Of a stretch of DNA of 64,000 bases, positions 22,001 to 28,000 are shown piece by piece. Both the position numbers and the translations under genes were made by a program. Under the pieces are notes generated by a model. The model was not told where the DNA came from. It saw nothing but the letters and a program-made list of their open reading frames with translations, and ran no database searches. Position 1 is the stretch's first letter, and the number at the start of each line of letters is the position of its first letter. The DNA lies in NCBI RefSeq assembly GCF_006345805.1, contig NC_043022.1, forward strand, positions 15,004,001 through 15,068,000. Reading direction: 5' to 3'. This stretch comes from Octopus sinensis (lineage: Eukaryota).

Positions 22001-25000
22001 TGTGTATCTAGAATGTAGCAACACACACAGACACACACACTTCAAACACAATACATAGAAATCATCACACGAGTTCATGCAATAATGCAAAATTTCCAAT
22101 ATCATTTTAAACCTAGGAATCAAATACAAAACTAACAGAACTAAATTACCAACATGTAGCTAATAAGGTCACTAAAAGCTAACCAACATGTAGCTAGCAA
22201 GGGCATTAAAAACTAACCAACATGGAGCTAGCAAGAGCATGAAAAACTAACCAACATGGAGCTTGCAAGGGCATGAAAAACTAACCAACATGGAGCTTGC
22301 AAGCGCATGAAAAACTAACCAACATGTAGCTAGCAAGGGCATTAAAAACTAACCAACATGGAGCTAAGAAGGGCATGAAAAACTAACCAACATGGAGCTT
22401 GCAAGGGCATGAAAAACTAACCAACATGTAGCTAGCAAGGGCACTAAAAACTAACCGACATGGAGCTTGCAAGCGCATGAAAAACTAACTAACATGTAGC
22501 TAGCAAGGGCATTAAAAACTAACCGACATGGAGCTTGCAAGGGCATGAAAAACTAACCAACATGTAGCTAGCAAGGGCATTAAAAACTAACCAACATGGA
22601 GCTAAGAAGGGCATGAAAAACTAACCAACATGGAGCTTGCAAGGGCATGAAAAACTAACCAACATGTAGCTAGCAAGGGCACTAAAAACTAACCGACATG
22701 GAGCTTGCAAGCGCATGAAAAACTAACTAACATGTAGCTAGCAAGGGCATTAAAAACTAACCAACATGTAGCAAAACAAAGTAAATCAACATGTACCTGC
22801 AGTGTACAACGAATGGCCCAGCATCAGGTATTGATTCTTGTTGCTCGTTGACCATTTGGAGGAAATATAAAACCGTTCCTGGATCGGAAGGAACGCCATA
22901 GTCTGGCCAAATCATGAAATGGTAATGATAGATCCTTCTGGGACCTTCTATCTGGTAAATGGAAACAAAAGAAAGGTTAGTTAAAGCTGACACCAACCTA
23001 ATTAAGTTAATTAACCTAATTAAGCAAAACAAAATATTTTAATTACTAGATTTGCTAGCAGTTAATAGTATTAACGAAAAACTCCCAATAGGAGGAGGCG
23101 TTACGAAAGGTTCCTAGTGGAAAACCCCATAAAAGCCAACGGGAGCCAGGTCAAAAGGGGGGTAGAGAGCCTCTTTCTCCTTTTATAATACCTTTTTCAA
23201 TTACAGGCGAAACCTCAGAATTGGTCCATTTATACTGGTCATTCTTGCACAATTCACCCACCTTTCAGAAAACTTGCCATCAGACAGCACTCTCCTCTCT
23301 AACCTCATCTTCCTTTTCAAGTGAAACTTGAAAAAGTTGATGAGGCCTTGACCAAAGAGGAAAGTGTCTGACTTTAGCCCTTTCAAACGGGTCCACCATA
23401 CAACCTCTTTCGCCACAGCCACTAGGCACAGGAAAACAGCCTTGCCCTCCTTGTTAAAGGAGGTCGGCGGGGCAATCTTCACTATGGATTCAGCTGATAG
23501 CTGGATCTGTCCTATACGTGACAATGATGATGATGATGATAATCCTTTCTACTATAAGCACAAGGCCTGATACTTTAGGGAGAGGCAAGGGGGTTGTTGA
23601 CTACATTGACCCCAGTACATAACTGGTACTTATTTTCTATTGACCTTAAATGGACGAAAGGCAAAGTTGAGCTTGGTGGAATTTGAACTCAGAATCTAAG
23701 CGTTCTCTCTGGTCTGTTTTCAATTCTTCTACCTTACCACCTTAATATTACCACCACCACCACTACTACTACTACTACTACTACTACTAATAATAATAAT
23801 AATCCTTTCTACTAAAGGTACAAGGCCTGAGATTTTGGGGAGGGGGATAGTCGGTCGATTACATCGACCCCAGTGCATGACTGGTACTTATTTCATCAAC
23901 CCCCAAAAGGATGAAAAGCAGAATTGACCTCAGCAGAATTTTGAGCTCAGGCCATAAAGACAGACGAAATGTCGCTAAGCATTTTGCCTGGTATGGCTAA
24001 AGGTTCTGCCAGCTCACCACCTTGGTAACTACTACTACCACCACCACTAAACATAATAATAATAATAATAATAACTGTCGTCGTTTAATGTCTGCTTTTC
24101 ATGCTGGCAAGGGTTGGACGGTTTGACTGAGGACTCTCCTACTCTGATGTAATCTCCAGGGATACAGGCATCCAGCAACAGGACCTCCGTAATGCCATGA
24201 TAGACCGTGAAGTCTGGCGTAGCATGGTAAATTCCATTGTCTCGACCACGGTCGAACAATGATGATGATGATGATGAGGACTGGTAAGCCAGGAGGCTGC
24301 ACCAGACTCCAATCTGATCTGGCAAGGTTTCTACAGCTGGATGCCCTTCCTAATGCCAACCACTCAGAGAGTATAGTGGGTGGTTTTTATGTGTCACTGG
24401 CATGGGGGGGGGACACTCAGGTTGCACTGGCATCGACCACAGTTGAATGGTGCTGTTTATGTGCCACTGGCACGGGTGTCAACCAGGTGGAACTGGCTTC
24501 GACCACACTCAAATGGTGTTTTTTTTCTTTTACGTGCTACTAGCTGGTACTCATCATCATCATCATCATCATTTAGCATCCGTTCTCCATGCTAGCATGG
24601 GTTGGACGGTTCAACTGGGGTCTGGGAAGCTGGAAGGCTTCATCAGGCCCAGTCAGATCTGGCAGTGTTTCTACGGCTGGATGCCCTTCCTAACGCCAAC
24701 CACTCCGTGAGTGTAGTGGGTGCTTTTTACGTGCCATCGGCACAGGTGCCAGACAGAGCTGGCAAACGGACATGAACGGATGGTGCTTTTACGTGTCGAA
24801 AATACATAAATACTTGATGCTTAATTTTTTCACATGGGAATTGTCTTTGCAATGATACAGGACAGGATGCCAAAAACAGCAAAAATAACAAAAATAAAAC
24901 AGATAATTTGCAAAAAAGAAAAGAAGGGAAAAGATAGAAAATACAATATTCCAACCTTGGAGTTTGTTTTCCGTGACACTTCAAACTCTCTGACTTCAAA

Positions 25001-28000
25001 CTCAGGTTGAGACGTTTCTCGAACACCCTTTATGAACATCTTACCACTTGGTACTACTAATTCTTTCGTTTCAAGTTCCTTTGGCCAATAACGCATTGAC
25101 TTTTGCTGCAGAGAAACACAAACCATTTATAAGCTGAGGAATCATCTCCGGTTTAGCAGAAAAAAAACCAAAAATACAGGTGGACAGAGCAAGATTAATA
25201 TACGGCGCTTACCATATTTGCAGGTATATGACACATTCTTGCATAAGATGCAACCGTATTTTACAAGCATTGTCATCATTTATAGGCGTAGGAGTGGCTG
25301 TTAGGTAAGTAGCTTGCTTACCAACCACAAGGCTCTGGGTTCAGTCCCACTGCATGGCACCTTGGGCAAGTGTCTTCTACTATAGTCTCAGGCTGACCAA
25401 AGCCTTGTGAATGGATTTGGTAGATGGAAACTGTAAGAAGCCTGTTGTATATATGTATAGGTGCAGGAGTGGCTGTTAGGTAAGTAGCTTGCTTACCAAC
25501 CACAAGGCTCTGGGTTCAGTCCCACTGCATGGCACCTTGGGCAAGTGTCTTCTACTATAGTCTCGGGCTGACCAAAGCCTTGTGAATGGATTTGGTAGAT
25601 GGAAACTGAAAGAAGCCTGTCATATATATGTATGTATATATATGTGTGTGTGTGTGTGTGTGTGTGTATTATATTGACAACTGATGCTGGTGTGTTTACG
25701 TTCCCGTAGCTTAGCGGCTCGGCGAAAGAGACCGATAGAAATAAGTACTAGGCTTACAAAGAATAAGTCCTGGCCTCGACTGAAGGTGGTGCTCCAGCAT
25801 GGCCACAGTCACATGACTGAAAAGAGTGAAAGAGTATTTATCATTCACTTTTCCATGGGTCAGATGGAATTATTGGGATAGGTGCAAGTGTGAGGTGTGG
25901 GTGCGTGGTAACAAGCTTGCTTCCCAACCACATGGTTCTGGGTTCAGTTCCACTGTGCAACACCTTGGGCTAACCAAAGCCTTATGAGTGGATTTGGTAG
26001 ATAGAGACTAAAAGAAGCCCATTGTGCATGCACATGTGTGTGTGTGTATATATATATGTGTGTGTGTGTGTGTGTGTGTGTGTGTAAATATGTTTGTGTG
26101 TGTATGTGTGTCTTCGTTGGTCCCCCCTGCACTGCTTGACAACCAGTGTTGGTGTGTTTACATCCCTGTAACTTGGCAGTTCAGCAAAAAACACAGATAG
26201 AATAATTACCAGGCATTAAAGAAAAAAATATGTGCACACACACACACACACACACACACAAGTCTTATTTTCCACTGACCTTTCCTCTTTCCACCTCCTT
26301 TGTTGTCATGACGATGACCCTAGATTTATCTTGCCAAACCATGCGCCAAAAATCTGCAACTGTTGTCGGCAAAGGTCCCTGGGTCGCCATGTATTTTTTC
26401 TTTGGTTCCACACCCTCTTCGTCTGTCATCTGGAAATAGAGGAAACACTAAAGAATGAGAGAGAGAGAGAGAGACGGAGAGAGGGGAAGGAAGAAAGAGA
26501 AGGGTGAGTGGTAAGGTTGAAAGGGAGGAAAGGAAACAGACAGAACACTGATAAATGAGAAGAGATAATAGCTGATATGATGATAGATGATTGGTGCATG
26601 ATGATAGATGATTGATGCATGATGATAGATGATTGGTGCATGATGATAGATGATTGGTGCATGATGATAGATGATTAATGCATGATGATAGATGATTGGT
26701 GCATGATGATAGATGATTGGTGCATGATGATAGATGATCAGTGCATGATGATAGATGATTGGTGCATGATGATAGATGATTGATTGGTGCATGATGATAG
26801 ATGATTGGTGCATGATGATAGATGATTGGTGCATGATGATAGATGATTGATGCATGATGATAGATGATTGGTGCATGATGATTGGTGCATGATGATAGAT
26901 GATTGATGCATGATGGTCCCTGTTAGTGTATGTCTTTACATTTTTGTGCATTGTCTACAACATTAGAGCCTTTTGGCTCTTATTTCTAGCAATGTAGGTG
27001 TTTCTAACACCCTAGTCACATTTAGTGATAATTATTATTATTATTATATATATTGGTACTGGTTTGTTTACGTCTGTCACTTGGTGGTTCAGCAAAAGAG
27101 ACTGATAAAATAGGTCCCACCAGACTAAAAACATGTACCAAGTCCGAAATGCGTGATTAAAACCCTTCAAAAGCAGAGCATTCAACCTGATCCCTTCTGT
27201 TGAAGGCATTTGGACCAGGTCTACAGACTCCTTCCCTTCCAGCTATCAGCCTGCAAGACCCTACAAAAACAATGGGTGTAGTTTACGCTGGTTCCCTTCC
27301 TCTTCTGACGAAGATGTTAAAAGATTGAACAGAGTAGGCGCAGGAGTGGCTGTGTGGTAAGTAGCTTGTTTACCAACAACATGGTTCCGGGTTCAGTCCC
27401 ACTGCGTGGCACCTTGGGCAAGTGTCTTCTACTATAGCCTCAGGCCGACCAAAGCCTTGTGAGTGGATTTGGTAGACGGAAACTGAAAGAAGCCCGTCAT
27501 ATATATGTATATATATATATATATATATATATGTATGCGTGTGTCTGTGTTTGTCCCCCCAACATCGCTTGACAACCGATGCTGGTGCGTTTATGTCCCC
27601 GTTACTTAGCGGTTCAGCAAAAGAGACCGATAGAATAAGTACTCGGCTTACAAAAGAATAAGTCCCGGGGTCGAGTTGCTCGATTAAAGGCGGTGCTGCA
27701 GCATGGCCGCAGTCAAATGACTGAAACAAGTAAAAGAGTAGATTATGATCTTACCGTAATTATGTTAGCGTTGATATAATCAGATCCGGGTTCATTGGGG
27801 TCACCATCCCGGAGAATGAATCGTGTCTCATCAACTGAAAGACAAATTAAAAATAAGAGCACATGATATTTCTTATGGAACAGTCATCATCATCATCAGT
27901 ATCATCAAAATTGCTACTGTAATTAATTAATCAGTGTAATTATAATTATCATCATAATCATTATCATTGACATCGTTTTAATGTCCACTTTTTCCATGGA

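Follow-up and report, generated by a model that had tools for sequence, protein, structure and literature searches.

An octopus SHP2 ortholog with proline and serine at the two backdoor cysteine positions

SHP2 is a central regulator of Ras/MAPK signalling and a major drug target. Two cysteines of its protein tyrosine phosphatase (PTP) domain, C367 together with C333 (hereafter called the backdoor cysteines), have been discussed as a redox safety device, and C333 has also drawn attention as a point of attack for selective covalent inhibitors. Oxidation of a PTP cysteine to Cys-SOH is known to end in one of two ways, with the formation of a sulfenylamide or of a disulfide (PMC5587708). In human SHP2, C333 belongs to a site that can be targeted by cysteine-reactive compounds; the same position holds proline in 34 other human classical PTPs, and C367 is highly conserved (Yarnall et al. 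2022, PMC9578986). Substitution of C333 by proline leaves the activity of the human enzyme about unchanged, raises its melting temperature from 49.2 to 54.7 °C (~5.5 °C) and adds ~5 kJ/mol of stability (PMC9578986), and the C333S/C367S enzyme retains phosphatase activity (PMC12340136). The subject of this report is the SHP2 gene of Octopus sinensis, contained in a stretch of 64,000 nucleotides (contig NC_043022.1, positions 15,004,001 to 15,068,000; hereafter the window, to which all coordinates refer), whose product has proline and serine at the positions of human C333 and C367.

The octopus gene and its two substituted positions

The gene lies on the minus strand, is single-copy, and is the PTPN11/SHP2/corkscrew ortholog of O. 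sinensis; the interval 24956-26429 covers its exons 9 and 10, which carry the two positions. HMMER alignment to the chains of human SHP2 in the PDB (E ~1e-230) placed a proline opposite C333 (YIATQGC) and a serine opposite C367 (KCVKYWP). The codons CCT (26375-26373) and TCA (25099-25097), from which an earlier note on this DNA had concluded that both backdoor cysteines are absent, were confirmed. Editing of A to I could not restore a cysteine at either position, as the same note had stated, since CCT contains no A and TCA changed to TCG still encodes serine. Taken with the comparative evidence below, the likely reading is that this is an intact SHP2 ortholog in which the Pro/Ser pair is derived but old, that the two cysteines were lost in two steps, and that no backdoor disulfide is formed.

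The catalytic apparatus was found to be complete. When exons 11-13 were read and aligned to human SHP2, the sequence VHCSAGIGRTG (divided between exons 11 and 12 after the catalytic cysteine), WPDYGVP and QTEAQY were all intact, in agreement with the claim that HCSAGIGR, the WPD motif and the Q-loop had been retained. Apart from the equivalents of C259, C459 and C486 the coleoid PTP domain has no cysteine, and no new one has appeared, so that an intramolecular disulfide involving the catalytic cysteine or lying behind it would not be possible. The HCSAG context of the P-loop, in which PTP1B forms its sulfenylamide, is present in the octopus protein but is present in human SHP2 as well. Human C104 and C174 were also correctly said to be replaced, by Ser and Phe; both columns vary widely among orthologs, with C64/S53/T5 in the first and C63/F25/Y16/R12 in the second. 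Insofar as the motifs and the D'E loop are intact, the encoded SH2-SH2-PTP enzyme appears to be catalytically competent, active and capable of autoinhibition.

Coding segments were located by tblastn with a human SHP2 query that was checked afterwards against the PDB alignment; all lay within ~61,300-18,300. Exons 2-14 (n=13) were delimited by eye and by script, and exon 15 was found with the database protein. The resulting 14 exons inside the window have GT-AG at every boundary and join in a single open frame, and the spliced model is identical at 593/593 residues to XP_029651584.1 (O. sinensis) and CAI9741491.1 (O. vulgaris; annotated as PTPN11). Exon 1 (MLKQF) was not found in the window, which matches chromosome CM016884.1 of assembly GCA_006345805.1 at 100% identity. 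The features of the gene, all on the minus strand, are as follows.

Exon 2, 61171-61293, minus strand: start of the N-SH2 domain (RWFHPNIWG...TLSVR), from tblastn and the splice model
Exon 3, 43775-43969, minus strand: N-SH2 with the D'E loop (same as human); YPLNS, with Ser at human C104
Exon 4, 42970-43132, minus strand: first half of C-SH2, ending VMIRFL; Phe at human C174
Exon 5, 36496-36612, minus strand: second half of C-SH2
Exon 6, 32853-32963, minus strand: SH2-PTP linker
Exon 7, 30507-30603, minus strand: start of the PTP domain (QQQEC...) and the phosphotyrosine loop KNRYKNILP
Exon 8, 27755-27834, minus strand
Exon 9, 26280-26429, minus strand: YMATQGP, with Pro (CCT, 26375-26373) at human Cys333; canonical AG/GT
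Intron 9, 25106-26279, minus strand: 1.17 kb, noncoding; three copies (~175 nt) resembling short interspersed nuclear elements (SINEs) and (TG)n/(TA)n microsatellites
Exon 10, 24956-25105, minus strand: QKSMRYWP, with Ser (TCA, 25099-25097) at human Cys367 (KCxxYWP); canonical AG/GT
Exon 11, 22797-22951, minus strand: WPD loop to ...GPFVVHC; catalytic Cys TGC at 22801-22799
Exon 12, 21870-21937, minus strand: P-loop
Exon 13, 20081-20229, minus strand: Q-loop
Exon 14, 18146-18366, minus strand: C-terminal tail, with YTNI as the counterpart of human Y542
Exon 15, 15975-16035, minus strand: YQNV as the counterpart of human Y580 (YENV), then the stop codon

Pfam analysis of the database protein identical to the window model (P0121) returned SH2 in two stretches (8e-52) and Y_phosphatase at residues 263-512 (5.5e-76), and the domain order N-SH2, C-SH2, PTP is present. 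Among PDB entries SHP2 scored 769 bits and SHP1 628, and all other PTPs (receptor PTPs) scored at most 365. At the sequence level, the D'E loop of the N-SH2 domain, which plugs the active site, is identical to human residues 59-79, and the C-terminal tail has two Grb2-type YxNx tyrosines, of which exon 14 supplies YTNI and exon 15 YQNV. The domain architecture, the best match, the catalytic motifs, the D'E loop and the tyrosines of the tail all place the predicted octopus protein among the SHP orthologs. The two cysteine features are the only SHP features that it lacks, and many true orthologs lack them too; because Cys333 is gone from 24 of the 121 other aligned SHP sequences, the cysteine of TQGC is not usable as a criterion of membership. 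The gene was already known and annotated, and is an ordinary conserved ortholog rather than one of a new kind.

Compared with human SHP2 (PDB 2SHP, 4DGP, 5EHP), the octopus protein has the same N-SH2/C-SH2/PTP organization, ~65% identity over 520 residues (769 bits), an identical D'E loop, the P-loop and Q-loop, and the two YxNx tail motifs. It differs in having Pro for Cys333 and Ser for Cys367, in the absence of C104, C174 and C318 as well, in a shorter C-SH2 loop, and in a tail that is unconserved save for the two YxNx motifs. It is in effect a natural C333P/C367S SHP2, and so resembles the engineered human C333P (PMC9578986) and C333S/C367S (PMC12340136) enzymes; these, however, carry changes made in one step in a scaffold that had adapted to both cysteines, whereas the coleoid pair is long-standing and is accompanied by ~35% other substitutions. 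The octopus sequence implies nothing unusual about octopus biology itself. To our knowledge, the human C333P/C367S double mutant has not been characterised.

Distribution of the two positions among animals and among PTPs

The 120 best database homologs were aligned and the columns of positions 333 and 367 were read; the counts below refer to 122 sequences, with the human protein and the window model included. All named hits among the 120 were PTPN11/csw orthologs, and the sequences from the Logan assembly collection each adjoin a named taxon. A neighbor-joining tree recovered the species groups and placed the octopus sequence with cephalopods within Mollusca, and since the tree follows species groups, the aligned sequences are orthologs and not hidden paralogs. 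At position 333 there were 97 Cys, 11 Ala, 9 Pro and 2 Gly, with one each of Thr, Ser and a gap; at position 367 there were 79 Cys, 33 Ala, 6 Val and 4 Ser. Cysteine at both positions (C/C, position 333 given first here and below) was found in the chiton Liolophura, the brachiopod Lingula, two nemerteans, amphioxus, a hemichordate and human, as well as in spiders, Limulus, myriapods, crustaceans, ticks and nearly all insects. This occurrence from chiton, Lingula and arthropods to amphioxus and human makes C/C ancestral for bilaterian SHP. Cys333 was accordingly present in the bilaterian SHP ancestor, making it older than the framing in terms of 'mammalian evolution' in PMC9578986. Outside molluscs position 333 alone has been replaced by Pro in acariform mites, Gly in sea spiders, Ala in Timema and Thr in one scorpion copy; the mites reverted to Pro333 independently, like the cephalopods.

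Among molluscs, gastropods are C/A (Haliotis, Patella) or C/V (Littorina, Babylonia), with one gastropod S/V, and bivalves are mostly C/A, with Solemya C/V, Mytilus A/A and Sinanodonta woodiana P/A. The P/S pair is confined to cephalopods among the 120 orthologs. It is present in Argonauta hians and in a cluster of sequences (P0002/P0122) ~90% identical to the octopus protein. P0122 lies on transcript contigs (3-4 kb) that lack introns, and the index of the Logan collection lists it in 59 blocks; 3 of the ten P0122 runs listed are cited in transcriptome papers on Sepia esculenta (PMC10141105, PMC10442824, PMC9538352), and the Sepia codons at the two positions are CCT and TCC. The presence of P/S in O. 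vulgaris, Argonauta and Sepia esculenta dates it to before octopods and decapods diverged; it is a coleoid-wide state, derived but old, and not octopus-specific. The absence of Cys367 is the rule in conchiferan molluscs, and total loss of the backdoor thiols has arisen at least four times in molluscs. Homolog searches of the databases that could be reached found no Nautilus sequence, and a search with the exon 8-11 peptide, aimed at short sequences from squid or nautilus, brought up no additional cephalopod and no fragment above 55% identity. The other molluscan SHP2 proteins (Mytilus, Sinanodonta, Haliotis/Patella, Littorina/Babylonia) resemble that of octopus in being single-copy and without Cys367, and in Mytilus and Sinanodonta without both cysteines; they differ in having Ala or Val, not Ser, at position 367 and in mostly keeping Cys333, and many bivalves have a Cys350 that cephalopods lack.

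A cysteine at human-equivalent position 350 was found in most bivalve orthologs without Cys367 (24 of 42), versus 6 of the 79 sequences that keep Cys367. It was rejected as a compensating cysteine for octopus, since phylogeny confounds the association, cephalopods have Ser there, and the fold topology suggests that the site is probably far from the active site. Human-equivalent position 434 (SDPGG), near the WPD loop, holds a further variable cysteine: it is Cys in most orthologs from invertebrates other than molluscs (74 of the 79 that keep Cys367), Gly in human and Thr in octopus.

To place the two residues among PTPs in general, the octopus PTP domain was searched against 1.84 billion cluster representatives, and 249 PTP domains with the catalytic cysteine were read in the best 150 proteins. 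Position 333 was Pro in 224 of these active domains and Cys in 20, all 20 SHP-like. In the best-scoring (principal) domains, position 367 was Cys in 137 of 144 proteins (95%), and in 105 additional domains, mostly second domains of tandem receptor PTPs, it was Cys in 59 and Ser in 12. These counts, with PMC9578986, bear out the background on which the earlier note had drawn, that TQGC is SHP-specific and KCxxYWP highly conserved. The P/S pair occurred in 13 of the 249 active domains, and 12 of the 13 were secondary domains, mostly in the D2 position, of tandem receptor-type PTPs. The octopus protein thus shares Pro333 with classical PTPs of the PTP1B type (TQGP and KCxxYWP), which differ in not being of SHP type and in almost always keeping the motif-4 cysteine (Cys367) in their principal domains, and it shares the whole pair with receptor-PTP D2 domains, which likewise are not SHP-type proteins. 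Pro333 is thus a return to the pan-PTP consensus, and Ser367 is the rarer change for a principal catalytic domain.

In the open-access literature, as ranked by the searches, no paper combining the backdoor cysteines with invertebrate, mollusc or corkscrew SHP2 surfaced. The distribution of the two positions over invertebrate SHP2 is apparently unreported there, and it is a modest but useful comparative result. It adds that C333 is no mammalian invention, that both cysteines have repeatedly been given up in invertebrates, and that one molluscan clade is without the 'highly conserved' C367. The natural variants P/S, A/A, P/A, C/A, C/V and C/C could be used to probe reversible oxidation and a possible stability cost of Cys333.

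Probable history of the two losses and possible redox consequences

In the two-step history favored here, the motif-4 cysteine Cys367 would have been lost first, at or near the base of Conchifera (the shell-bearing molluscs), where cephalopods now have Ser at this position while gastropods and bivalves have Ala or Val. A single early change of TGY to TCY (Ser), followed by GCN (Ala) and GTN (Val), would be the most economical route in nucleotide steps. The SHP-specific Cys333 would then have been replaced by Pro, the fold-stabilizing consensus of classical PTPs, in the coleoid stem or earlier. Once C367 was lost, Cys333 may have been left without a disulfide partner, so that a stabilizing proline may have become acceptable; the ordering of these events is hypothetical. 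At position 333 the fold of octopus SHP2 has probably gained some stability.

Several points weigh against this history or limit it. Separate losses of C367 in cephalopods and in gastropods with bivalves would be equally possible. The timing is provisional, being drawn, among molluscs, from chiton, gastropod, bivalve, octopus, argonaut and cuttlefish sequences. The bivalve Mya arenaria (P0051) is C/C, with Cys at position 367 (KIKCVRYWP), and is nested among Ala-bearing heterodont bivalves. Every statement made here on the oxidation behavior of molluscan SHP2 is an extrapolation, and the result reported for human SHP by Chen et al. 2009, given below, makes it less likely that rescue through a sulfenylamide is efficient in this scaffold. 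The Cys367 of Mya itself looks like a re-gain, for which two nucleotide steps would be required. Together with the independent losses, this apparent re-gain indicates that position 367 can toggle.

The earlier note had treated the C333-C367 disulfide of SHP1 and SHP2 as established. It was indeed found by one study, but it is disputed, and according to PMC9578986 an oxidised crystal structure showed only a C367-C459 disulfide. The claim that the SHP-type backdoor has been lost stands to the extent that neither a C333-C367 nor a C367-C459 disulfide would be possible in the octopus enzyme; as an octopus novelty it does not stand. The thiol of Cys333, which the covalent allosteric site of the human enzyme requires and at which its cysteine-reactive allosteric inhibitors are aimed, is likewise absent from the predicted octopus protein, and a changed response of octopus SHP2 to H2O2 is plausible. 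After exposure to H2O2, rescue of Cys-SOH would require external thiols, glutathione among them, or a sulfenylamide of the PTP1B type, in which the backbone nitrogen of the adjoining Ser attacks Cys-SOH and for which the HCS sequence has been retained. Failing such rescue, the irreversible sulfinic or sulfonic acid would be reached more readily than in human SHP2.

The alternative that survives best is that the replacements are neutral, the backdoor cysteines being dispensable in vivo because glutathione, thioredoxin and peroxiredoxin handle the oxidised cysteine, so that the positions drift and Pro and Ser are without regulatory meaning. This is possible, although we lean away from it. In orthologs conserved at 60-70% elsewhere, both positions have changed repeatedly in independent lineages. 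Mites, Timema, sea spiders, the scorpion copy, Mytilus, Sinanodonta and the gastropod have P, A, G, T or S at position 333, and position 367 is A, V or S over Conchifera, with the apparent re-gain in Mya. The human C333P and C333S/C367S enzymes also stay active, and published work disagrees on what C333 does. Against free drift, constraint is indicated by Cys367 in 95% of principal PTP domains and by Cys333 in 97 of the 122 SHP sequences, and P/S is fixed within coleoids despite saturated synonymous divergence.

It is unlikely that the missing thiols act as an oxidation fuse, by which H2O2 would over-oxidise coleoid SHP2 irreversibly and reactive oxygen species (ROS) would remove the enzyme permanently rather than pause it. 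The absence of Cys at positions 333 and 367 and of any new cysteine in the PTP domain is consistent with such a device. A human SHP lacking both backdoor cysteines is reported to have been irreversibly oxidised and inactivated in vitro in the work of Chen et al. 2009. The HCSAG context that allows a sulfenylamide in PTP1B is nevertheless kept, cellular glutathione can trap Cys-SOH, and so fragile an enzyme of the essential receptor tyrosine kinase/Ras pathway seems unlikely to have persisted class-wide.

Tentatively, and with no better prospects, the losses might mark a truly different redox regime, in which conchiferan SHP2 runs without the motif-4 cysteine, and coleoids and, independently, mussels and unionids run without any backdoor thiol. 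If so, these proteins would provide a natural experiment on the purpose of the backdoor cysteines, with sulfenylamide-only protection, glutathione-dependent rescue and deliberate irreversible inactivation by ROS as candidates, and Pro333 would be a gain in stability that came free once the partner cysteine was gone.

The reading first put forward, that SHP-type redox buffering was newly lost in the octopus lineage and that regulation by H2O2 was altered as a result, is very unlikely. Both cysteines are indeed absent, C/C is ancestral, and P/S is found only in cephalopods among the 120 orthologs. As an octopus-specific event, however, it is already refuted by the presence of P/S in Argonauta and Sepia; C367 is missing in almost all gastropods and bivalves, and double loss is found in Mytilus, Sinanodonta and one gastropod as well. 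It had also been argued that the state would be ancestral if most molluscan orthologs had the same residues. For C367 this applies in substance, the residues being different ones (Ala or Val), and for C333 it does not.

The idea that a cysteine-bearing version is masked by errors in sequencing or assembly, by a pseudogene, or by faulty or alternative splicing of an exon can be dismissed, as no evidence of an artefact was found beyond a defective O. bimaculoides model showing that annotation errors occur at the SHP2 locus, and against it stand the same protein from two independent assemblies, the agreement of Argonauta and of Sepia transcripts, splice sites that are all canonical, an open frame, a proportion of non-synonymous differences (pN) far below the synonymous one (pS), and unduplicated exons 9 and 10 in the window. 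In the independent assembly of O. vulgaris, which diverges by ~4% in introns, exon 9 is identical, and exon 10 has four differences, none of them non-synonymous. Between Octopus and Sepia, pN is 0.07 and pS 0.79, with synonymous sites saturated, which indicates strong purifying selection on the SHP2 gene. No further copy of the TQGx, FWRMV, VIVMTT or KxxxYWP motifs was found in any frame within the window, so that a Cys-bearing duplicate or alternative form of exon 9 or of exon 10 was rejected for the window. The defective model is the older RefSeq protein XP_014769534.1 (P0003), which lacks exons 8-10, jumping from ...KNILP through 'CKSFLYF' to IEGPRR..., and has a spurious N-terminus too; it is an annotation artefact and misleading for residue checks in O. 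bimaculoides.

Surroundings of the gene in the window

The remainder of the window consists of introns of the SHP2 gene, rich in SINE-like copies and in pseudo-open reading frames derived from microsatellites. Inside intron 1, at 61644-62213 on the plus strand, lies an open reading frame of 189 amino acids, which on visual inspection looks like the C-terminal end of the reverse transcriptase of a retrotransposon without long terminal repeats (…ILEYG…YEERL…SLE.RR..GDLI…); Pfam returned no match for it. Rfam and tRNA (ARAGORN) scans of the window likewise gave no matches, the SINE-like element included. In intron 9, at 25278-26020, three SINE-like copies of ~175 nt were observed, two of them in tandem at 96% identity, with (TG)n/(TA)n after each. 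The core of this element also occurs at 36084-36123 (plus strand) and 59328-59367 (minus strand), and on the two strands together the window holds at least 14 occurrences of its translated 11-residue core.

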